Origin: Oopsacas minuta
Lineage: Eukaryota > Animalia > Porifera
Direction of reading: 5' to 3'
Assembly (NCBI GenBank): GCA_024704765.1
Contig: JAKMXF010000045.1
Location: 1 to 54,126 of the forward strand
DNA: 54,126 nt
Shown here: piece after piece, positions 5,849-32,321 of the stretch
Layout of the letters: every line of letters begins with the position of its first letter
Numbering within the stretch: position 1 is the stretch's first letter
Program-made: the position numbers and the translations under genes
The notes under the pieces: generated by a model
What the model was told of the DNA's origin: nothing
The model's database searches: none
What the model saw: the letters and a program-made list of their open reading frames with translations, nothing else

Positions 5849-7078
5849 TTAAAAAGCTTGTAAACAGAAATTATCATTGATAGATATAACATAAATAGTT
5901 CCTAATGCTGAAATACTAATACCAAATGGATCTGTAAATTCTCCTCTCCCATGTCCTTTCCTTCCTATGGTGTGTATTAGCTCTCCTGAAGGAGATAGTA
6001 TCTTGATATTACTACGGATAAAATCAGTAATCAGAATATTCTCTGCTACATCCAAACAAAAGTATCTGGGATAATGCACCACACCATCCTTCCCAAGAGT
6101 AATACATGAGTTTAAAAGACGTCCACTTCTGGAGTAGAAATGGACACAATTAGGGCTGTCATCTAGCACTACGATGTTAGTAGCAGTAACTTTAACATCC
6201 TGAGGGTGTTTTAGCTGTTGAGTACCCAAACAATTAACAAATTCAAGAGCTTTAGAGAATATAGAAACTCTGCTATTGTTCAAATCAGCAATATACACGT
6301 CTCCATTGTAGTCAACACAGAGTCCATATGGTTCATTTAGCTCTCCATCTCTTGCTCCTTTGTTACCAGTCCTCTTCACTAGCTTGTAATCCTTTTTGTT
6401 GAACTGTAACAGAGCGTGGAAATATGTGTCCGTAACGAAGACGTGATCTGTTGTCACAGCTATTCCCCATGGTCTCTTGAGTATGCTTTGTCCAAATCTT
6501 TTCAAGAAATTTCCTTCAAAAGTCACAACTTGAATACGACTGTTATACCAATCAGCTATGTAAATTAAATGATTTGATTCATCTAGAGATATACCCAAAG
6601 CATTTAATTCATTGTTACCTCTCCCTTTCTTTCCTACAGCTAGGATAGGTTCTTTCTTCATAGAGTAGTCCAGCTCCCATTCTTTCACCTCTCCGAACTC
6701 AGCGATTTGAGTTTGTAGTTGGGACAGCATCTTATAGGAGAAGAAGGGCTGCGGGAGTTTCGTGGGAGTCTCCAGCTGTTTGATGCGCTGTTGAAAGAGG
6801 TCAGTGGCCTGGTGATGGAGTTCTTTGTTCTCATTAACTTTTAGGCTTAGTTCCAACAGGTTTCGTTGAGTTTTTGCCAGTTCCTCCATGGCTGCATTAC
6901 GGGTGCTCTCTTTTGATAAATATTCCTCTTTCATATCTCTGAGTTTCCTCAGGAGAGCGTCCCTCCTCGCGATCAGCTGCTTAATTATGAGGTCGAATGT
7001 TTTCATGATTTTGGTAGCGACATACTCGAAATGTTCCACTTCTTTAATTGGTGCATTTATGGTCTGATTTGTTGCCAT
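5849..7078 (-). CDS. Coiled-coil + NHL-repeat beta-propeller protein (TRIM-NHL-like, no RING/B-box), intronless
   Basis: 409-aa ORF with an N-terminal heptad-rich helix, then repeated NHL units (IYIADWYNSRIQV, PWGIAV, PYGLCVD..GDVYIADLNNSRVSIF, PFGISIS). Confidence 0.9.
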   Translation of the reverse strand: MATNQTINAPIKEVEHFEYVATKIMKTFDLIIKQLIARRDALLRKLRDMKEEYLSKESTRNAAMEELAKTQRNLLELSLKVNENKELHHQATDLFQQRIKQLETPTKLPQPFFSYKMLSQLQTQIAEFGEVKEWELDYSMKKEPILAVGKKGRGNNELNALGISLDESNHLIYIADWYNSRIQVVTFEGNFLKRFGQSILKRPWGIAVTTDHVFVTDTYFHALLQFNKKDYKLVKRTGNKGARDGELNEPYGLCVDYNGDVYIADLNNSRVSIFSKALEFVNCLGTQQLKHPQDVKVTATNIVVLDDSPNCVHFYSRSGRLLNSCITLGKDGVVHYPRYFCLDVAENILITDFIRSNIKILSPSGELIHTIGRKGHGRGEFTDPFGISISALGTIYVISINDNFCLQAF

Positions 7079-10540: not shown

Positions 10541-11360
10541 TCACAAAACTAAATTTAACTCATTTGTTAGAACTAATCCTAAAGATCTAGAGAGCCATAT
10601 AATTCTATCACCCTCTTCCACTACTTCTATAGTCCGTATATGATTTCCTTCTTTTGAGAATATCTTGATAGCTTTACTAGTAAAATCTCTGATAAGAATA
10701 TTCCCTGCTGGGTCCAGACAGAAGAAATGAGGGGTAGTAATTTCCATCTGGCTACCCATAGATATAAGAGAGCGGAGTCTCTCTCCTGTGTGAGAGAAGA
10801 CATGGATACAGGGATTGTCGGTACAGAGCACGTATTCCTCATCAGATGTTAGCTTGATGTCACGAGGTCTCCTGATTTTCTGTTCAGTGAGGTTACGCAT
10901 ATAAATCAGAGAACTGTTGAGGATTTGGATTCTATTGTTAAGATAATCTGCCAAGTATACACCTCAGGTATAAGATACAGAGAGGCTATGAGGGGTGTTA
11001 AACTTTCCAATCTGAGTTCCCTCAGTCCCTACCTTAGTGACTAGAGAGTAATAATTCTCCTTTTTGAAGCAGAACACTGCATGCACTCCTATATCTGTGA
11101 TATACACATATCCCCCGTGTATAGCTATACCGTGTGGACACTCCACGTTCTGGTGAGTAAAGCTATCTAGATAGTCTCCTTTCTCAGAAAAGATGGAGAT
11201 ACGTGCATGTGGATTTAGTAGGTAGAATTCACCCTCTGTAACGAATATATTATTGGTGTTAGGATCAACAGTAACAGCATGAGGATTAAACAAATTCCCA
11301 GGAGCACTCCCTATCTCCCCAACAGCTACTACCTGTCTCATGTTATCGTACTTAGGGATA
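10541..11360 (-). pseudogene. NHL-repeat gene remnant nested antisense in a dynein intron; in-frame TGA at 10964-10966
   Basis: ORFs 10964-11341 and 10541-10954 are in the same frame, separated by one stop. NHL units include PHAVTVD, PHGIAIH, VYLADYLNNRIQIL and PHFFCLD. Confidence 0.8.
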
Positions 11361-16225: not shown

Positions 16226-16440
16226 TACATGTATATATCGGGGAAAATTGATACTCCGTTTTGCATAACTCACGCCTAGGCCCCAAACGATGGGTAAATA
16301 ATATTTAGTTTTATTTTCGTGGATTACAAAATCCACGAGAATATTTTGACGCCAAAAATCTCCAAATTTACGCTTCCATATCAAATCTTTCAAGCATTCT
16401 TAATTAATTAGGCAAACTTATTTACATATTGAGTATATTC

Positions 16441-18495
16441 ATGGCACACCCGAGTCTCAACGTCTGTCAAATAGAAAGGGACAAGAATATCTTAGATTTC
16501 GAATCTATAATGAGTCTCCCGAAATCTCTCCCTGAAGCTTACAAGCTACATTTGAAAAGGACGAACCATCCAGCTATCAAGTTGTTTGCCAGTAGTCTAC
16601 AAGCACATCGCTCTTGCAATGAAGCTATCCTGTTTCTGTATGGAGTGAGTGGTGCTGGCAAGTCATCCACCCTCAATCATCTCTTCTCCACAGACCTGAT
16701 TCCAACTTCTGCTACAGAGTCTGCCACAGATTCTGTCACTGAGTGGGTGAGTAGTATGCATAGTGAGCACTGGCGTGTCTCAAATCTGGAAGTGGGATTT
16801 GTGGATGTTCCTGGATGGGGAGACTCGGAAGGAAGAGACGCAACCAACTTTGCTCTCATGGAACAATTCCTCACTGTACATCTCATTCTCGGATCTAAAC
16901 CGAGAAAGCTCTACCCTAACATAGTACTGCTCGTCTTCAATTCCAATGACAATCGTATTTTGGGCAGTGAAGCTAATGCTTTGAGAATGTTAAGAACCTT
17001 GTCGAAACTGAACATAGTCGATAAGAAGCGACCTAATGTTGTTATCGTTCTAACTCATGTGTGCTCTCATTCAAAGATTGAATTCTCAGAGAAGTTATCA
17101 AAACAGAGTTTAATCTATCAGAACATAGCTCGTTCTTGTTTGGGAGTGAATCCACCTGTTGTCTTGATAGAGAACAATCCTACCTATCAGTTGACTATAC
17201 AGGGTGATTGGACACTGTTATATGATGATACAGAACAACCTCTCAATTTGTATAAAGCTATCAGAGATCTGATGGTGAGTGCAGGAGATGAAGTAGGGAA
17301 GGAAGCAATACGTCTCTACTTTGATTCTAGAGCTAAGAATCAACCCAAAGAGAGACTCAGGATAGATTCTAACTTGTGTAATAAAAAGATGTTAACAAAA
17401 CTTGAGAAAAATTGGTTAACTAATATTCAGTCAAGATTACCATCTTATAAATCAACTTCTCTAAATGTGTATTTACTTAATTATCTTTCTTCACATCCTG
17501 ATATGGATATTAAAGAAGGTGATGTCAACGGACTACTGTTAGCATTAGCTAATAATTGGTCTGATAAGTCTTGTATTAACACAAAAGATCTTTCTGTTCT
17601 GGAATGTTTACTCCCACATTATGTGATGAGTGTTAAAGAGAAAGAATTACTAACTAAGGCATTAGAGTTAAATACTCCTAAAATCCCAGATTGTATCAGG
17701 GCTATGGGGCATGGCTATGATATGAAAAATGGAACAATTACACCGGGACACATAATTGATTTATGTTTGGATGAGTATTTTTGTTCGTTTTTGAATGGTC
17801 CTCTCTCAAAAGCATTTTCGCTCTTTCCATTTGAAGGAAGTAGAATCTCATTTGGTACAATTACACTCGATGAAAGACGCGTGGCTCAAATTCTTCAACT
17901 TAACCTAGTGAAACAACAATTTTTTAATAATAGTGTATCCCTGAAATGCAATACGACTGCGTTAATAGATCCTTGCTTTTTTGAAATTGATCAAATTATT
18001 CGAAGTATGATGAATAATGAATTGGTGCATTTCTGGATAGAAGCAGGGTTATTTAATGTCCAATTAAACTTACCATTTGCTAAACTCTCTAAACAGTTTT
18101 GTGACGTCATCACCTCACTTCCTATTACAGCATTTACCGAAAATGGAGAACTAAATCTTGAGTTTTCCAATTTCTTTAACGAATATGGTCAATTTGTAAT
18201 AATCAGCGCTAATGGAGGTGGAATAGTTGAAGGAACTTTTAACTTTCTTGATTCTCAATCTGATATTTTGGATTTTACTGTACCATCTGATATTTTGGAA
18301 AAGATGGAATCGTATTTAGAGTTATTATTTGATCTAATTAAAGATGGCACTAATTGGAGAGATTTCTCCAATGACTTTTCTCAAGAAATATTTCGATTTT
18401 TACAAAGTTGGAATCGATTAATCTACAATGGTTCGGAGGAGAACAATCCTTCACTTCGCAAACTATTAAAGAAATATCTACTAATAATTATCTAA
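16441..18495 (+). CDS. AIG1/Toc34/septin-clade GTPase - MACPF protein, copy 1, upstream frame
   Basis: G1 GVSGAGKSS, G3 DVPG and G4-like VLTH. The MACPF start motif MGHGYD is at 17704 and the MACPF signature-like FFNEYGQFVIISANGGG at ~18172-18222. The 0-frame tail after ~18400 does not align with copy 2. Confidence 0.8.
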   Translation: MAHPSLNVCQIERDKNILDFESIMSLPKSLPEAYKLHLKRTNHPAIKLFASSLQAHRSCNEAILFLYGVSGAGKSSTLNHLFSTDLIPTSATESATDSVTEWVSSMHSEHWRVSNLEVGFVDVPGWGDSEGRDATNFALMEQFLTVHLILGSKPRKLYPNIVLLVFNSNDNRILGSEANALRMLRTLSKLNIVDKKRPNVVIVLTHVCSHSKIEFSEKLSKQSLIYQNIARSCLGVNPPVVLIENNPTYQLTIQGDWTLLYDDTEQPLNLYKAIRDLMVSAGDEVGKEAIRLYFDSRAKNQPKERLRIDSNLCNKKMLTKLEKNWLTNIQSRLPSYKSTSLNVYLLNYLSSHPDMDIKEGDVNGLLLALANNWSDKSCINTKDLSVLECLLPHYVMSVKEKELLTKALELNTPKIPDCIRAMGHGYDMKNGTITPGHIIDLCLDEYFCSFLNGPLSKAFSLFPFEGSRISFGTITLDERRVAQILQLNLVKQQFFNNSVSLKCNTTALIDPCFFEIDQIIRSMMNNELVHFWIEAGLFNVQLNLPFAKLSKQFCDVITSLPITAFTENGELNLEFSNFFNEYGQFVIISANGGGIVEGTFNFLDSQSDILDFTVPSDILEKMESYLELLFDLIKDGTNWRDFSNDFSQEIFRFLQSWNRLIYNGSEENNPSLRKLLKKYLLIII
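16510..17374. repeat. ~865-bp near-identical inverted repeat (GTPase module); partner at ~22709-23573
   Basis: Nucleotide identity is visible from ATGAGTCTCCCGA to GATA(G/A)ATTCTAACT. About ten amino-acid differences over ~288 codons. Confidence 0.9.
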
Positions 18496-19553
18496 ATTGG
18501 CTCAATTCCCTCAAACAATTTTCAATATTGTTTGACTATTCTTTCAATTTAGTTCCCATTCATCTTTTCGTAGCAACAGAATATCCACAAATTGCTCAAT
18601 TGATAAAACAGGCATTAGAATATACTCTGAATGCTGACGAATTATACTATTTGTATGATGAATCTCTCAATATCGATTCTCTCGCTACTGAAATGAACAA
18701 AACCATCATTAAGAATCCTAGACCAGCATCTCTTCAGTCCAAATCAACTTCTATAGCAGTGACTCGATTTAAGAAACGATCTGAGAGTACAATTGTCGCT
18801 GAACCCTCAGCTCATTTTCAACCGATAAACAGTGTTAGTTTAAAGAAACCAAAATATATAACTAGGGATGAAGTTTCTTCTTCAGATAAAACTAAAATTG
18901 AAAAACTTAAGTTAAACTGCTTCAATTCAGATTCCAAAGTAATCTTGAAGGGCGGAAAGTGTATCAAAATAAGTCAAATTAATATAGGCGATTATGTCTT
19001 ATCCTTAAATAAGAAATGTAATCAGTTTACCTATTCCAAAGTGTACATGTGGGGACATCTAGACCATGACTCAACAGCTTCCTTCCTGGAGATACAACAT
19101 GAATATGGTTCAATCAAGTTAACAGAAAATCATCTAATTCTACACGGCAATGATAAGCAGGTGGTCACAGCTTCTAGCTTACATATAGGAGATATAATTC
19201 ACTATTTTGAATCTACAGATTCTGATATCTACCGTATAATTCCTACTAAGGTTACAGGAGTTAGACTACATGTGCACAAGGGAGTATACTCTCCTTTCAC
19301 TCGTAATAGCTTAATTATTGTGGATGGAGTAGTATGTAGTGTATTTGCTGTCCCAGATAGTTCAGTCAACCAGTTTACTAGATTCGAGAAAATTTGTAAG
19401 ATTTCACTGTCTCCTTTCATCTTTATCAGCTTTATTGGCTCTGAGGATAAGCTTATCATAAAATCGCAGAATATCAAATTACATCCTTACACAGAGCTAC
19501 TGCTTCGCCTATATCACTCTGTTCCTAGAGTGAGGAGTTACTTTAATAAGTGA
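18396..19553 (+). CDS. -1 frame continuation of copy 1: end of MACPF + linker + Hedgehog-type Hint/Hog domain
   Basis: LQWFGG..YLNWLNSL..LFDYSFNLVPIHL aligns with copy 2 LVWLAG..YSIWLESL..LFDSSVSFVPIYL. It then has N|CF (Cys at 18918), IGDYVL, TENH, GVYSPFT and VDGVVCSVFA, plus an SRR-like LHPYTELLLRL. Confidence 0.85.
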   Translation: MFTKLESINLQWFGGEQSFTSQTIKEISTNNYLNWLNSLKQFSILFDYSFNLVPIHLFVATEYPQIAQLIKQALEYTLNADELYYLYDESLNIDSLATEMNKTIIKNPRPASLQSKSTSIAVTRFKKRSESTIVAEPSAHFQPINSVSLKKPKYITRDEVSSSDKTKIEKLKLNCFNSDSKVILKGGKCIKISQINIGDYVLSLNKKCNQFTYSKVYMWGHLDHDSTASFLEIQHEYGSIKLTENHLILHGNDKQVVTASSLHIGDIIHYFESTDSDIYRIIPTKVTGVRLHVHKGVYSPFTRNSLIIVDGVVCSVFAVPDSSVNQFTRFEKICKISLSPFIFISFIGSEDKLIIKSQNIKLHPYTELLLRLYHSVPRVRSYFNK

Positions 19554-19596
19554 TAATTATACTTTTAGTACTAAACTTGCTTTCTTAAAAGGTATA

Positions 19597-20888
19597 CAGG
19601 GTGTATCATATGTCTTGGCGGGTCAGTAAAATGTATATAGAATTTTCCGTTATCGAGTATTTGTTCCAATTATTTGCCAATATAACCACCATTCCTATCT
19701 AATACAAGTTGTATTCTAGCTGGCATACTACAAACTAAATTTTCTAGAATATCAGGGTCTATGTCAGCCCATGCGGATTTGACTCGTAGAATTAAGTCTT
19801 CCAGCTTAGTAGCATTTGCCATTTGTCCAACACGATCTTTCAATATTGACCAGAGGTTTTCAATCGGGTTCTGGCGAGTAACTCGGTCACTCAACCTTCC
19901 TCCAAAACCGAGGAAAGTGTTCTACATACCATCTCTGTGTAAAATTCGCAGTGTGAGGAGGGGCACCATCCTGCATGAATAGGAAATCAGACATGTCACC
20001 AAGCATTGATCTCTCCAGAATAGAATCTGTATTTGCAGTTCTATTTGTAGCATCACTACACGTCTTGGCTAAGATATTATCTCGATAGTGGGCTCCATTT
20101 ATCGTTTGTTCTGGAGGAATGATATGTAATTCTGAGAGAGCCCTGTGGGACATCATACCCCAGACTTGGATTTTTGTGGGAAATTTCATTTGAACGATAG
20201 GTTCAATTTTATTTAAATTCTGAGCCCAGATACGATCGTTTTGACGATTTGGTATGGAGAATACTTAGAAAGGTGATTCATCTGACCACAACACCTTTTT
20301 GCAGTCACCAATTGTCTAAATTATGTGATCTTTAGCGAACTGGAGGCGTTCATCCTTCATTTTTCTGTGTTAATCGAGGTATTTGAGGGCGTTTGAATGA
20401 TTTTACTCCCAAAGAATTGGTCAAATAGCTATATATACTTGAATACGAGATAGAATATCCCTTACCATTGAGAATACGTGCAAGTTTACGTGTTGACTTC
20501 CCCCTCTTCTCTAGAGATTTTGAGATGACTACTTGCAGACATTTTCCATGTTTCTCATTATGCCACCACCTTTGTATCGACCTCAAACCGACACCTAGCC
20601 TTGAAGCTACAATCTTCTGCTCAATTCCAGTTTTCAACATGGCAATTGCTTACAGGCGAATGGACAAACCATGATCTTTGACATTCATATTTCACAAAAA
20701 TAAGAGAAATACAAAAATGAGTTAAAATACAAATCAAAGTGAAAGCATTTATAAAGAGGTGTATTTGTAATAGATAAGACTTAGTAGTTAAGTGTAAGAC
20801 AAATATAATTCAATAATAAATTGTCGTCTGGTTAGATCAACTTTAAACATTATGAATTCATACCCGCCAAGACATATGATACACCCTG
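19597..20888 (-). mobile_element. Full-length Tc1-like element with a frameshifted DDE transposase
   Basis: Perfect 27-bp TIRs CAGGGTGTATCATATGTCTTGGCGGGT with TA TSDs. Minus-strand pieces encode WSDES, QDGAPPH and NPIENLW. Confidence 0.92.
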
Positions 20889-21335
20889 TACATTTGTAGT
20901 GTGAATATACGAACTTTGATATTATTGTATTATTTTTGTGGTTGTATATTTTGTATTTCCTTTTAAAGATTGCCAATAAATATGTATATTTCACTAGTAG
21001 CTCATACATCTTCGGTTCTAACTTATCAAGAATAGAAATATATATGTAGAGTAGAACTCGGATTAGATGTACTACGTACTTTTCTCAAAACAGATCATTA
21101 ATTTTGTACGATTGGTAGGGTAAAATATTTGATAAGACTTTTGTTCTGTAGGGGATACGTCTTAGCGAGTTCTACTGGAGTAATAAAGGAAATTTCCATG
21201 CTCAGAACTGAATATTTACGAAATGAAATGTAAACAAGTGTATAAACATTCAAATTCTTATAAGCTCGCCCTTGAATTCCATACAATAGATTTCTCAAGG
21301 ACTAGTTTACTCGAATGCATCTTAAAATAATTCCA

Positions 21336-23648
21336 TCAAATTTTGTGTTTGCTTTTTAATTTGAATCGTTTGAAAGCTTCAGGGACAGATCGGATCTCAT
21401 TTACAGTAGAATCAATAGGTGTATCATTTACTTGGAATGAACTACCGATGCTATCCAAATCTAAACAATGCTCACTGAATAATCTCTTTCCTTGTGGGTG
21501 AGTTAGCTCAAACGCCATTTTGAGTTCTTCTCCAACTATCTTATCAATATGGTCAGCTAGCAGATAGATGGGGACAAAACTAACAGAAGAGTCAAACAGT
21601 ATAAATGTCTCTGCTAGTGATTCCAACCATATTGAATACGTTTCTCTATTTAATCCTTCCATAGTCTCTGCAGTAGCACTCATGTCACCAGCTAACCAAA
21701 CCAGACTTGTCTTATCAAGTTTTTCCATTATCTGTCTCTCTTCTAGCGCGAGCTCACTAGTCAGATTTTTCCATTGATATCCTTCCTGTATCAAATCAAA
21801 GTACAATTCTATAACCATATGTATAGTGCGAAGAGAACTGGTGTCCTCATTCGTAATAGTATAACGTCCTTCTATTAGGCCGCCGCCATTTGCTTGTAGC
21901 ATGACAAAATGTCCATACTGTTTGAAGAATTTTGTATAAACTGGTATTAACTGGTTATTAACCTCATTAATACATTGATGTGGGAGAGATTTGATTGCTG
22001 TAGTAAACTCAGAATTGAAACGAACAAATTCTAAATTTAACTTCAAACATACTTTAGAAAATTCTACACGAAAGAATAACTCAGACAATTCATTGAATTT
22101 ATCTTCCAGTAGTTGTACTGCTAAAGTTCTTGAATCTTGTAGACTATTGTGGAAGAGACATTTGTCCAATTGTTCGATAGCTTCTTTCAACTGCTGTGGA
22201 GCAGCAGAGCTTCTGTCTACAGTACCATATGTAAATCTAGAACCTTCTATTGGAGAAACAGTAATCGCTTGAGATAAGAAAGTTAATAAAAACGGATTGA
22301 ACGCTTCGTTTTGGCTCCAGTCGAAAATGGAAGCTGCACTCAGGTCCTCTGATTCTATGTTATATCCACAACCAATTGCAGATATAGAATCTGACAGAAC
22401 TAATGATTTGATAAGTGAGCTCTTGAATAAAACAAGTTTCTCTTTAACTGATAGGAGGAATGGCGTAATTTTAATCTCCAACTGAATTATCGTTAATGAG
22501 GACAACTCTGCAATTGTATGAATTCCACATAACTCAAGAGCTAACAGTAACCCAGAAATATTTTCCGTACAAATACCTAGTATAGGATTCTCCTTCACAA
22601 ATTGTAATATAAATAAGTTTAATTCAGTGTTAGTATGATTTCGGATCTCGCTACGCAGGACTTCAACCCATTTCTTAGTACTTTTTGCATGTGAGTGAAT
22701 GTCCAGACAGTTAGAATTTATCCTGAGTCTCTCTTTGGGTTGATTCTTAACTCTAGAATCAAAGTAGAGACGTATTGCTTCCTTCCCTACTTCATCTCCT
22801 GCACTCACCATCAGATCTCTGATAGCTTTATACAAATTGAGAGGTTGTTCTGTATCATCATACAACAGTGTCCAATCACCCTGTACAGTCAACTGATAGG
22901 TTGGATTGTTCTCCATCAAGACAACAGGTGGATTCACTCCCAAACAAGAACGAGCTATGTTCTGATAGATTAAACTCTGTTTTGATAACTTCTCTGAGAA
23001 TTCAATCTTTGAATGAGAGCACACATGAGTTAGAACGATAACAACATTAGGTCGCTTCTTATCGACTATGTTCAGTTTCGACAAGGTTCTTAACATTCTC
23101 AAAGCATTAGCTTCACTGCCCAAAATACGATTGTCATTGGAATTGAAGACGAGCAGAACTACGTTAGGGTAGAACTTTCTCAGTTTAGATCCGAGAATGG
23201 GATGTACAGTGAGGAATTGTTCCATGAGAGCAAAGTTGGTTGCGTCTCTTCCTTCCGAGTCTCCCCATCCAGGAACATCCACAAATCCCACTTCCAGATT
23301 TGAGACACGCCAGTGCTCACTGTGCATACTACTCACCCACTCAGTGACAGAATCTGTGGCAGACTCTGTAGCAGAAGTTGGAATCAGGTCTGTGGAGAAG
23401 AGATGGTTGAGAGTGGATGACTTGCCAGCACCACTCACTCCATACAGAAACAGGATAGCTTCATTGCAAGAGCGATGTGCTTGTAGACTACTGGCAAACA
23501 ACTTGATAGCTGGATGGTTCGTCCTTTTCAAATGTAGCTTGTAAGTTTCATGGAGAGATCTCGGGAGACTCATCACAGAGCAACTTTCTGTCTCCTTTAT
23601 ATGAGATGGTGATAGTATAACCTGTTTAGGATTAATATGTGTTGCCAT
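21336..23648 (-). CDS. GTPase - MACPF protein, copy 2 (uninterrupted 770 aa, no Hint domain)
   Basis: Same GTPase motifs as copy 1; IGCGYN MACPF start; FFKQYGHFVMLQANGGG signature-like motif; W..SL...VPIYLL at the MACPF end; short basic tail. Confidence 0.85.
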   Translation of the reverse strand: MATHINPKQVILSPSHIKETESCSVMSLPRSLHETYKLHLKRTNHPAIKLFASSLQAHRSCNEAILFLYGVSGAGKSSTLNHLFSTDLIPTSATESATDSVTEWVSSMHSEHWRVSNLEVGFVDVPGWGDSEGRDATNFALMEQFLTVHPILGSKLRKFYPNVVLLVFNSNDNRILGSEANALRMLRTLSKLNIVDKKRPNVVIVLTHVCSHSKIEFSEKLSKQSLIYQNIARSCLGVNPPVVLMENNPTYQLTVQGDWTLLYDDTEQPLNLYKAIRDLMVSAGDEVGKEAIRLYFDSRVKNQPKERLRINSNCLDIHSHAKSTKKWVEVLRSEIRNHTNTELNLFILQFVKENPILGICTENISGLLLALELCGIHTIAELSSLTIIQLEIKITPFLLSVKEKLVLFKSSLIKSLVLSDSISAIGCGYNIESEDLSAASIFDWSQNEAFNPFLLTFLSQAITVSPIEGSRFTYGTVDRSSAAPQQLKEAIEQLDKCLFHNSLQDSRTLAVQLLEDKFNELSELFFRVEFSKVCLKLNLEFVRFNSEFTTAIKSLPHQCINEVNNQLIPVYTKFFKQYGHFVMLQANGGGLIEGRYTITNEDTSSLRTIHMVIELYFDLIQEGYQWKNLTSELALEERQIMEKLDKTSLVWLAGDMSATAETMEGLNRETYSIWLESLAETFILFDSSVSFVPIYLLADHIDKIVGEELKMAFELTHPQGKRLFSEHCLDLDSIGSSFQVNDTPIDSTVNEIRSVPEAFKRFKLKSKHKI

Positions 23649-25293
23649 CCTATAGACCTTTATGGCAATTGGAGAGATTGCCTAAAGCAAAAGAAAAATA
23701 TACGACAAAAACTACATCATATTAAATCAGTGGGATGCCAGTATATTACCAACAAAATTGTTATCAAATTACAACACTAGAAATTCTATTGTTGGTAATC
23801 TGCTTACCTTTGTGGCTGCAAATTACCAACAATACCGAAAATTGTTAAATTCTTCCTTAGCCCGGATACAAGTCTTCAATAGGCTTCAAGACTTGGTACA
23901 GCGCTTTGCACGTAAATCGCGCTCATTTCCGCTACGCTATTTTGCGTGTTTAAGGTGGTACGCTACCAGCGGGTTTATGTGTTATCTTGAAGCTACTAGG
24001 TGTCTATATACTACAAAAAAAATTTCTGGTTATCGGTAAAGTGTTACCACTAATACTAAAAATCATGTACTAATACAAAGTATATATATAATGTGAAGAA
24101 TTTCCGTAAATCAAGATAGAAATTTGAAAATTGGTTAAAAGTAGGCAAGTATTGACGAAATGGATAAATATTAGCGCATCCTAGTAAATACTGTACTTAG
24201 AAGTCCTAGAACCATGCCAAACAAAATCAATACTGGTGCTAAAAATGGTTCTCTAATAATTCATGGTTTACCTGATATAATACAAACTTTAATTTAGTAT
24301 CTTAACAGCTGTTCTTAAAATACTCTATATTGCTCGTATTTTCTTTGTTTTATATTCGATTTCATTTCAATGAATCTCAGTACTAGGATACTTGAACGTG
24401 TAACAATTTGACAATATGTGTTGGTAATTTGCAGCATTCCCAAAATCAGTAAATGAAGAACGCTCATTTATATGAATTATGGTATCTTTACAGGAATAAA
24501 GAGCCTCGGTTCTGTGATCAACTAGAAATAATAAAGAGGCGGATTCAAACACAAATCCGAGGGGAGGGTTGGGCTAAGATTATTTCAGGAGAGCTGCCCC
24601 ATAAGTTCATGGTTCATAACTAAATTAAGATTATAATATCTAAAATAGCTCAAAATCCATAAAAATGTCAATGATATATCCAAAGTGTACTATTCAAGTA
24701 ATTCATAAAAAGGAATGGAAAATATGTCCAATGGTCCACCCCTTTTGTTGCGTTTGCATATCGCCACACATCGATCAAGATCCTGCTGCGCTTGGATACC
24801 CTCGAAATAATCCAAATTTCTCTAATTTATTGTCACGCCAGGAGGTCTATTTTTAACACAAAATAGCACGAATTTACAAGTTTCATCAAAAATCACCCTA
24901 AACAGTTTACGCACAACCACTATTACTTCAGTAACTAGAGCTTAATTATCATACTATATAATGATAATTATGCTGGTTGTATAATATAGCCATTGATACT
25001 TGAATAACAGCTGGGTGATATGAGCAACATAGAATAAACTTGCCCACAAACACATAGCTACAACTTCTATGAACCAAGAAAAGAAAAGAAATATAACCTT
25101 ATGAAAAGAACTGTTTTGTCAGGCAGCCTAATAAATAGATGTTACATTCTACCTTTTTTTATAGGAAATACGTTTACAGATGCCTTATGATGTCTATCTA
25201 GGATAGTCAAGATGGTCTAATCAGGCCGATGCTCCGATAAATTCAAAGTACAGTGCAACCTGTATAAGTGGGGTCTCTTAGGCCCGTCGGAAG

Positions 25294-30800: not shown

Positions 30801-32321
30801 AGTGTAGATACAGATAAACCTCTCATATTCACTTCTACATACAAATATCCTCCAATCAAGTAATGATTATATTCATCATAGTTTCCTTAGATAAATATCA
30901 AAAAGTGATTTTACATGAGCCATAGACATTATATATAAATGTAACACTTTTGATTTTGCAATTATTATTGATTATTAATGCATCTATGGCAGGGAATCCC
31001 TGGAGAGGTGATGTTTCCTCGTATTTAGCAGTTTATCTAGTAAATGTTTGTACTTGACAAATTTACACTACCAGGGAGAGCGAGAGAGCGAAAATTTAAG
31101 CACCACTGCTCCTGAAAAATGTCCAAGGAAATGTCCAATGTACAGAGAATTCTAGAAATATTGGTAGGTGTTATGAGAAGAATTACCATCGAAAATATGC
31201 ATGAGTATGCCTGTACAATTGGTAGTTTCTTAAAGAATTGCCCATTAACAATTAATATTCATCAAATATAATCCCATAGAGGACCAACCAATCCCACAAA
31301 AGTCTATTCACCGCCCTCCAGTTGAATCAGGGGTCTACCATTACTCTATGGACAAGCGACCTCACGGAGTGTGTGCTATTTTTAACAATACTAACTTTAC
31401 TACAGAGAATCTGGGCAAGAGGAAAGGATCTGAGATAGATAGAGACCGTCTAACGACTATGTTCCAGCACCTACAATATAAAGTAGAGGTGTATAATGAT
31501 CTTACTGCAGGTAACTTAAATCCTTCCATATACGCAGGTACTTAGTACTACTTACAACAGTGCCTAGGGCTTTAGGACTGGTAAGCGCAAAAGTAATCAA
31601 TTTTTGGATATATTTACAGAATTACAGTAGATTAAATAATACGACCAGATATCTTAATAAATTGATTTATGCCTTCAAGTTTTCTGTCTATCTATTGGTC
31701 TCATAAGGTTCACTATAGAGACCATGGGTCTCTGATGCCTTTGTAACATATCACATTATAGATCAAACACTTTGGAGAATGAATGAGATATCTCAACGTA
31801 ACCATAAAGATTTCGATTCCTTCATCTGTTGTATCCTCACGCACGGTACTGACAATGATGCTCTGTATGGATCAGATGGTAAGGATGTAAGCCTCAGAAA
31901 AGTGATGTCTTTCTTCTACGGGAAGAATGCTAAGACTTTGTTTGGGAAACCAAAGATATTCTTCATCCAAGCCTGCAGAGGAGATCTTGAGGATTTGGGG
32001 TTCACTTCTAGTTCTATTGCAGCTGACTCAGAAGGCGATGATATGGTACACTTCGATTCTTCAGATCTACCTGACACAGCAGACTTCTTGATTGCATTTC
32101 CAACTTCTTCCGGGTTCGTTTCCTTCCGCTCTCACAACGAAGGAACATGGTACATCAAGGCACTATGTGATCAGCTGACGTCTTGTCATAACCAATACGA
32201 CTTAATGACTATACTCACTATGGTTAATGGGAAGGTTGCTGCAAGGAGGACATCTGAGGGGTACAAACAGATGCCCGCACCTGTAACTCATCTAAGAAAG
32301 CTGGTATATATACGTACCTAA
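27821..32321 (+). CDS. DED-containing initiator caspase (caspase-8/10-like architecture). Proposed exons: 27821-28318, 28587-28770, 31101-31163, 31280-31510, 31762-32321
   Basis: All proposed introns are GT-AG and phase-consistent (0,1,1,1). A DED-like domain is split over exons 1-2. Catalytic motifs RKGS, LTHG, QACRG and SFRS..GTWYI are present. Linker exon(s) are the least certain part. Confidence 0.75.
30033..30863 (+). CDS. TPK1: Thiamine pyrophosphokinase, intronless (start codon uncertain)
   Basis: ILLNQP, VCSDGGANRLY, GDLDS, QDNTDLLKAL, GRFDH, CGLVPIG, TTTGLRWN and STSN motifs. Confidence 0.92.
   Translation: MYRVVDMCRFWVSLIRLFRFTRSERIVSRRSSNKSINSINSLYPLRILSPDTETGESALILLNQPLHPSLTRTLFYKCTYRVCSDGGANRLYALSFHDLTPDQIVGDLDSVTHSVLQYYKDRGTHIVQDTGQDNTDLLKALLILPSSVSSVYILPPFTGRFDHVLACINSLYTWNNGHPSVPAYLISETTICFLLPAGRNMISFPPGHEDQFCGLVPIGEPASCVTTTGLRWNVKNEAFRFGALISTSNQFESNVVSVDTDKPLIFTSTYKYPPIK

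Follow-up and report, generated by a model that had tools for sequence, protein, structure and literature searches.

Why would a perforin-like protein without a visible signal peptide carry the autoprocessing domain of the Hedgehog family? This question is raised by a 54,126-bp contig of the glass sponge Oopsacas minuta (JAKMXF010000045.1, positions 1 to 54,126, here called the window), in which two convergent, intronless paralogs lie as two long frames. Copy 1 (16441..19553, + strand) encodes the deposited protein LOD99_10591, and copy 2 (21336..23648, - strand) encodes an intact protein of 770 amino acids. Each protein opens with a GTPase of the Toc34/AIG1/septin type, from which a helical linker leads to a MACPF domain; a C-terminal region follows. 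In copy 1 the latter is a disordered linker leading into a complete Hedgehog-type Hog domain, made up of Hint and a sterol-recognition region (SRR), while copy 2 lacks the Hog domain and ends in a basic tail. The locus is thus a two-gene GTPase/MACPF pair of which one member carries a Hog domain, which confirms the initial annotation of this DNA; all the GTPase, MACPF and Hint motifs that it named were found where it had placed them, and the matches lie well outside what chance would give. Such an architecture points to a protein that forms pores by attacking membranes from within the cell. On balance we hold it probable, judging from sequence comparisons and structure models, that copy 1 is a Hog-anchored, GTP-assembled cytosolic MACPF pore-former, which copy 2 would join as a partner.

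The GTPase modules are located at 16504..17374 (+) in copy 1 and 22709..23579 (-, aa 24-313) in copy 2, and contain the P-loop GVSGAGKSS (copy 1 16642-16668, copy 2 23441-23415), DVPGWGD (16804-16824 and 23279-23259) and VLTH (17047-17058 and 23036-23025). Both pass the cut-off of the Pfam family MMR_HSR1 (23.3-24.1 bits, cut-off 21.9), and neither reaches those of AIG1 (22.8-23.1 bits vs 27) or Septin (21.6-21.7 vs 26.2); relatives from Mytilus clear the AIG1 cut-off at 45 bits. We built a family profile from 37 members and compared it with all solved structures in the PDB, which matched the GTPase region to Toc34 (5.9e-6), then to septins, EngB and GIMAP4. Similarly, in Foldseek searches with the AlphaFold2 model of copy 2 (mean pLDDT, the predicted local distance difference test, of 82), the N-terminal third matched Toc34/Toc33 with TMt 0.59-0.67. 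The P-loop (G1) residues G70, G73, G75 and K76, as well as D124 of the DxPG (G3) motif, are at least 90% conserved across the family, and P126 and G127 are invariant. The family therefore shares fold and motifs of the G domain with Toc34/Toc33, GIMAPs and septins, Toc34 being the best solved match. Tail anchors and dimerisation via the G domain are features of Toc34 and of several GIMAPs, and hydrophobic tails end some members of the present family too; the difference is that here the G domain and the anchor are separated by an inserted MACPF domain.

The assignment of the middle region to the MACPF fold was borne out by the copy 2 model and by Foldseek. In copy 1 this domain (17707..18632, +) follows a helical linker (17375..17706, +, defined by alignment to the copy 2 model), starts with GHGYD (17707-17721) and contains a frame break, to which we return below. 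In copy 2 it occupies 21474..22373 (-, aa 426-725), starts with GCGYN (22373-22359) and displays the canonical order of elements, beta1-TMH1-beta2-HTH-beta3-TMH2-beta4, where TMH denotes the transmembrane hairpin regions and HTH the helix-turn-helix, in keeping with the bent central beta-sheet and its two flanking helical clusters (TMH1 and TMH2) that characterise the fold. Against Pfam MACPF (PF01823, curated cut-off 21.5) copy 2 scored 26.5 bits and relatives 38-67 bits; the N-terminal piece of copy 1 scored 17.9 bits, a low value because the frame break splits the domain. The family profile matched this region to perforin-1 (2.9e-11) and to C9 (about 1e-9; 1.2e-9), and the C-terminal half of the copy 2 model retrieved perforin (3.4e-11), GNIP1Aa, C6, C9, Mpf2Ba1 and TgPLP1, the Foldseek probability being 1.00 for perforin, C6, C9, GNIP1Aa and TgPLP1. 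The counterpart of the MACPF signature, (Y/W)-G-(T/S)-H-(F/Y)-x6-G-G, is YGQF-x6-GGG in copy 1 (18184-18222) and YGHF-x6-GGG in copy 2 (21917-21879), with the T/S position missing.

The perforin fold is not always used to make pores, as astrotactins, BRINPs and Torso-like use it without pore formation. With a non-lytic MACPF domain, the same architecture could serve on membranes as a lipid-anchored GTPase scaffold or as a platform for signalling. Both predicted TMH regions of copy 2 have a rather polar, weakly amphipathic sequence with an unclear alternating pattern, which is why the MACPF domain could be non-lytic, and MACPF identity between paralogs falls to 18-30% while GTPase modules stay at 39-58%. 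However, both regions are long enough for hairpins (43 aa in TMH1 and 49 aa in TMH2), the signature residues Y578, G579, G589 and G590 are invariant or nearly so in the family, and the best fold matches are the lytic perforin, C9 and GNIP1Aa. Weighing these points, we regard a non-lytic scaffold as somewhat unlikely.

The C-terminal region of copy 1 begins with the disordered linker (18633..18917, +, pLDDT below 50), which holds a basic TRFKKRS motif (18762-18782, +) and, upstream of the predicted cleavage site, a TRDE motif. The Hint module (18918..19352, +) opens with Cys-Phe from 18918, the Asn|Cys junction being at 18915-18920, and contains a His at the general-base position (within 19047-19064), TENH (19122-19133) and VVCSVFA (19329-19349, +). 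It is followed by an SRR-like helix-loop-helix tail (19353..19553, +, stop codon included) with an HPY motif at 19482-19490. Copy 1 matches Pfam Hint (PF01079) with 97.3 bits (E 1.2e-27), and the family profile matched the tail to Drosophila Hedgehog-C (3.5e-25) over chain residues 228-461 of 471, so that the SRR is included. In a model of the tail, the Hint core shows pLDDT above 90, preceded by ~90 disordered residues and followed by the helix-loop-helix, with helices at residues 323-342 and 360-380. By fold, this model best matches the Drosophila Hedgehog Hint D46H (6tyy; TMt 0.91, root-mean-square deviation 1.8 A), followed by 1at0.

The active site was compared across an alignment of 26 tails, which come from sponges, mussels and one ctenophore. 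The nucleophile C171 (second-frame numbering, nt 18918-18920) and the His of the TxxH motif, H242, are invariant in all of them, and the His of the SRR HWY motif (H359, in HPY here) is nearly so; the same catalytic elements are named in a review of Hedgehog autoprocessing (PMC9163320). The Asp general base of Drosophila Hedgehog (D303) is not present in any of the 26 tails, its position being filled by an invariant His, H217. An engineered D303H Drosophila Hedgehog keeps its structure and activity and accepts more substrates (PMC9163320), and the top fold match, 6tyy, is that same engineered Asp-to-His variant. The reading of the copy 1 tail as a Hedgehog-type Hint with SRR thus stood, on nucleophile, TxxH motif and SRR as well as on profile and fold matches. 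As a separate observation, some paralogs (P0030, P0034, P0040, P0041 and P0043; alignment A3, columns 200-400) carry an extra insert ahead of the real Hint, which resembles a Hint N-terminus with Gly at the position of the nucleophile Cys and looks like a degenerate second Hint.

The chemistry of the Hog domain could also be simpler than sterol transfer. If cleavage used water or a small nucleophile, the domain would be a self-removing pro-domain only, which activates or releases the GTPase-MACPF part without attaching a lipid. Two features of the active site fit this possibility, namely the His in place of the Asp general base, a swap that widens substrate tolerance in Drosophila Hedgehog (PMC9163320), and the residue preceding the Hint Cys, for which Hedgehog has Gly and copy 1 has Asn, with Ser, Thr, Gly or Ala at this place in its relatives. 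Conservation of the SRR helix-loop-helix and of the HxY motif stands against it. Furthermore, in members lacking the Hog domain its place is often taken by CaaX or hydrophobic tails, which argues that it is the anchor that is selected. We therefore consider a lipid-free pro-domain unlikely.

These alternative tails came from an examination of the C-terminal ends of 41 Hog-less relatives of 600-850 residues. Seven of the 41 end in a canonical CaaX box, when 0.3% would be expected (binomial p = 5e-11), and at least six others end in hydrophobic segments resembling tail anchors. Two Hog-less O. minuta paralogs on contig C33 (758 and 764 aa), for example, end in CSIL and CFIF. They may be read alongside copy 1, as the CaaX Cys lies ~10-15 residues past a TR(D/E)E-type motif and the Hog Cys1 ~11-18 residues past the same motif, so that the prenylated Cys and the sterol-accepting residue would be roughly equivalent in position. 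Prenylation at a CaaX box and insertion by a tail anchor both take cytosolic proteins as substrates, and ends of these types agree with the absence of signal peptides in the family. Taken together, CaaX and hydrophobic ends that fall where the Hog domain would cleave speak for a cytosolic protein with an anchor at its C-terminus, and lend indirect, comparative support to lipid attachment as the role of the Hog domain here. In perforin the membrane-binding C2 domain comes after the MACPF domain, a geometry which an anchor in this position fits by analogy. Copy 2 and its orthologs are without such an anchor and end just past a basic motif, KRFKLKSKHKI in copy 2 (21339..21371, -) and a similar KRYKLRTK... 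in the short orthologs; the TRFKKRS motif of copy 1, ~50 residues ahead of the cleavage site, resembles this basic tail.

The C33 paralogs belong to a five-gene cluster (G000 C33:452226-467900; L005, L008) in which two CaaX-ended Hog-less genes face three Hog-bearing ones on the opposite strand. Short and long genes are convergent there, as in the window, but their GTPases are not homogenised.

That the Hint part is joined to the GTPase-MACPF part, and is not a separately transcribed gene, follows from the relatives, dozens of which hold all three domains in one uninterrupted frame. In Mytilus californianus almost the whole protein lies within one coding exon, which makes the three domains one polypeptide; the architecture is old in animals. 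An uninterrupted Logan contig of a mussel relative was considered as transcript evidence and dropped, since the M. californianus gene is itself a single coding exon. The O. minuta genome (61 Mb) contains at least 13 paralogs, several in tandem clusters and most of them single open frames of ~1000-1234 aa. An exhaustive profile search returned 211 representatives at E < 1e-30. Among the named ones, Mytilus species (with one protein labelled 'DHH') and the ctenophore Bolinopsis have the three-domain form, and the proteins of the octocoral Xenia, of Hydra and of the springtail Orchesella combine GTPase and MACPF but lack Hint. No signal peptide was found in family members from sponge, mussel, ctenophore and cnidarian, in line with the cytosolic type first proposed for the O. 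minuta proteins. A further cluster includes a protein of the acoel Symsagittifera, a candidate relative. In the ESM Atlas (P0001), rotifer clusters pair a G domain with a stonustoxin-type MACPF (PF24674), with a score <0.9 that makes this a lead only; they may represent a second, independent GTPase-MACPF pairing.

One correction to the initial annotation concerns copy 1, which is not a single open frame in the window: it contains a one-letter frame break that the annotation does not mention. Copy 1 is divided between two overlapping open reading frames, 16429-18495 in frame 1 and 18408-19553 in frame 3, and a join is needed at ~18385-18390. The break was located at 18385..18390 (+) by matching to eleven orthologs, with which frame 1 agrees up to ...FSQE and frame 3 from ISIFTKLESINLQW onward. 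The deposited LOD99_10591 (988 aa) spans it by an artificial intron, at the cost of ~50 residues of the MACPF end. We made no joined sequence and searched the two pieces of copy 1 separately.

A fixed frameshift would make copy 1 a true pseudogene and leave copy 2 as the only functional gene at the locus. Besides the break itself, this could be argued from a third run (X4), whose gapless pieces leave just 17936-18076, 18361-18394 and 18974-19021 uncovered: the break as defined by the orthologs falls inside the second interval, and the ends of the pieces on either side of it could mark allelic variation. Nevertheless, contigs from two runs of the source sample, which span 17700-19445 and 17700-19622, each carry exactly one letter more than the window and otherwise differ from it at no position and at one position, respectively. 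Moreover, both frames are free of further stops and closely match the orthologs on each side, and the orthologs are intact in three other genomes. The O. minuta assembly combined PacBio and Illumina data and mixed different individuals (PMC10280926), which makes an uncorrected consensus error or an allele likely. Because the read-derived contigs hold the additional letter, the frame break probably reflects either an error in the assembly or an allele, and a pseudogene appears quite improbable. We also considered a programmed -1 frameshift at a T-run/CAAAG site and rejected it, since the frame changes upstream, at 18385-18390, so that frame 3 already matches the orthologs before the slippery site, and since the read-derived contigs have the extra letter.

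How the anchor-less copy 2 relates to copy 1 is suggested by an unusual pattern of similarity. Position 16504-17374 of copy 1 and its counterpart in copy 2 (23579-22709), that is, the whole GTPase module, are 97.8% identical over 871 bp without a gap. We compared orthologous short/long pairs from O. minuta and three other glass-sponge assemblies, and found that the GTPase modules of a pair are 92-97% identical within a genome, with 92-96% in the three other assemblies, whereas the linker and MACPF parts of the pairs are just 20-28% identical and the GTPase modules of O. minuta are ~80% identical to those of the other three assemblies. In maximum-likelihood trees the GTPase modules cluster by genome (support 100/99, 100/96, 97/98 and 87/85), whereas the MACPF domains separate into a short and a long clade (support 100/99). 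We read this as repeated gene conversion, in four genomes, limited to the GTPase module of the anchored/anchor-less pair, making the two modules a conversion tract. Such conversion is consistent with copy 1 and copy 2 meeting via their G domains.

In the other glass-sponge assemblies the genes of the pair are in tandem on one strand, and the inverted arrangement of O. minuta is therefore not needed for homogenisation. An invertible cassette built on the inverted GTPase modules was considered as well and found unsupported, given that the tandem genes are equally homogenised and that no joint beyond the repeat was seen.

From these comparisons we infer the following course of events, in which the cleavage and its adduct, the control by GTP, the formation of a pore, the membrane attacked and any role in defence or cell death are all part of the inference. 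The precursor of copy 1 would be synthesised in the cytosol, where its Hog domain would form a thioester at Asn|Cys (18915-18920) and pass the GTPase-MACPF part to sterol or a similar membrane nucleophile. The C-terminus of the product, which would have ~800 residues (~90 kDa), would tether it to a membrane on the cytosolic leaflet. On GTP the G domains would pair, as in Toc34, GIMAP and septins, and gather the MACPF units, which would insert into the very membrane that anchors them, which may be that of a vacuole housing a microbe or a symbiont, or else, in a death response, that of the cell itself. Copy 2, lacking an anchor, would join through the GTPase module that gene conversion keeps near-identical to that of copy 1.

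Several observations weigh against this Hog-anchored pore-former. The polar hairpin regions and the varying residue before the Hint Cys have been described above, and copy 1 is frame-broken in the assembly. No homogenised GTPase modules were found in the other O. minuta clusters, where identity is 39-58%; with homogenisation confined to this one pair, it may be a local effect of recombination without functional meaning. In the springtail, two proteins (Orchesella P0094 and P0109) have an N-terminal extension of ~250 residues with a hydrophobic, signal-peptide-like start, which would be unusual in a GTPase and may stem from a faulty gene model. Finally, no run recorded as RNA contained the locus. 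Run X5, which has another organism label, holds both genes (17700-23650) at 90-95% identity and probably derives from a close relative or a divergent population.

Parts of this architecture have precedents. GmGIN1 of the arbuscular mycorrhizal fungus Glomus mosseae combines an AIG1-like GTPase with a C-terminal Hog and has no signal peptide (PMC2362128), Biomphalaria has an AIG1 protein with a C-terminal Hint, its AIG genes being reported without signal peptide (PMC7053062), and amphioxus has CARD-AIG1-HINT proteins (PMC12373286). Compared by description, these proteins share with copy 1 an N-terminal AIG1-like GTPase and a C-terminal Hedgehog-type Hog/Hint, but none is described with a MACPF domain in between, and the amphioxus forms differ also in their CARD domains. 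GmGIN1 may thus be taken, by analogy, as a precedent for a signal-peptide-free Hog on an AIG1-like GTPase. Full-text searches, which did not cover subscription journals, returned no description of a protein that combines MACPF with either Hint or an AIG1-type GTPase, and neither Hint nor hedgehog is mentioned in the genome paper of O. minuta. The suggestion in the initial annotation that the three-domain architecture was undescribed therefore survives in part: the three-domain form appears undescribed in the literature searched, but GTPase-Hog fusions have been published, the individual parts are known, and three-domain relatives are already in public databases, named 'uncharacterized' or, in Mytilus, misnamed 'DHH'.

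Other known systems resemble single parts of the proposed mechanism. Perforin-1, complement C6-C9, MPEG1/perforin-2 and the bacterial GNIP1Aa and Mpf2Ba1, which share the MACPF fold and, in part, its signature with this family, are secreted or lumenal and find membranes by C2, MABP or other ancillary domains. By contrast, the present proteins have a GTPase in front and no signal peptide, and a Hog, CaaX or hydrophobic tail stands at the place of the membrane-binding domain. With Hedgehog, copy 1 shares the Hint fold (as matched to 6tyy/1at0), Cys1, TxxH and an SRR with an HWY-like motif; unlike Hedgehog it has neither the Hedge signalling domain nor a signal peptide, its N-terminus being the GTPase with no hydrophobic leader, and it differs at Asp303 and position -1. 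A parallel in function may be seen in prenylated guanylate-binding proteins (GBPs) and gasdermins, immune effectors of the cytosol that approach membranes from that side, the former by GTP-controlled exposure of a C-terminal lipid and the latter as pore-formers after cleavage. This is a functional analogy only, with no sequence or fold relationship to this family.

Between the two genes lies an interspersed repeat of ~1.3 kb (19595..20890, no strand) with ~29-bp terminal inverted repeats, which is outside the system. It has at least 15 near-full-length copies in the genome at 84-90% identity, a read-contig depth 10-100 times that of its flanks and short open reading frames in which no Pfam domain was found, and is probably a non-autonomous DNA transposon. 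Elsewhere in the window are two NHL-repeat (six-bladed propeller) genes (5849-7078 and 10541-10954, both -); since NHL genes adjoin the family in two other glass-sponge assemblies as well (L001 19586-20761; L002 15283-16458 and 19799-21046), this neighbourhood is conserved. A caspase-domain exon (Peptidase_C14, E 7e-38) is found at 31779-32321 (+), ~8 kb from copy 2.

Extending the argument from this pair to the whole family, we propose tentatively, and with less confidence than for copy 1 itself, an ancient animal system that may be common to sponges, ctenophores, cnidarians, molluscs and springtails. It would consist of a GTPase-switched cytosolic MACPF pore-former with interchangeable C-terminal anchors (Hog sterylation, CaaX prenylation or a hydrophobic tail), its partners matched by GTPase-limited gene conversion. 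The idea is directly testable, as the proteins are encoded in single exons, with catalytic residues and a predicted cleavage site already mapped, and as experiments could use mussels, for which immune-challenge data exist. The concerted evolution limited to the GTPase hints at which parts of the partners must match.

Perforin-like proteins are known as secreted or lumenal weapons, and animal Hog domains chiefly as makers of the Hedgehog signal. If this wider reading is true, the system would hold the first perforin-like protein attacking membranes from the cytosol, and be the first case in animals, outside Hedgehog and the nematode Hog-related proteins, of Hedgehog-type sterol transfer arming an effector. 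The family would then give the Hog domain a second job in animals, and, by combining a perforin fold with a GTP switch and with several kinds of lipid anchor, would take cell-autonomous immunity or regulated cell death back to the earliest animal lineages.

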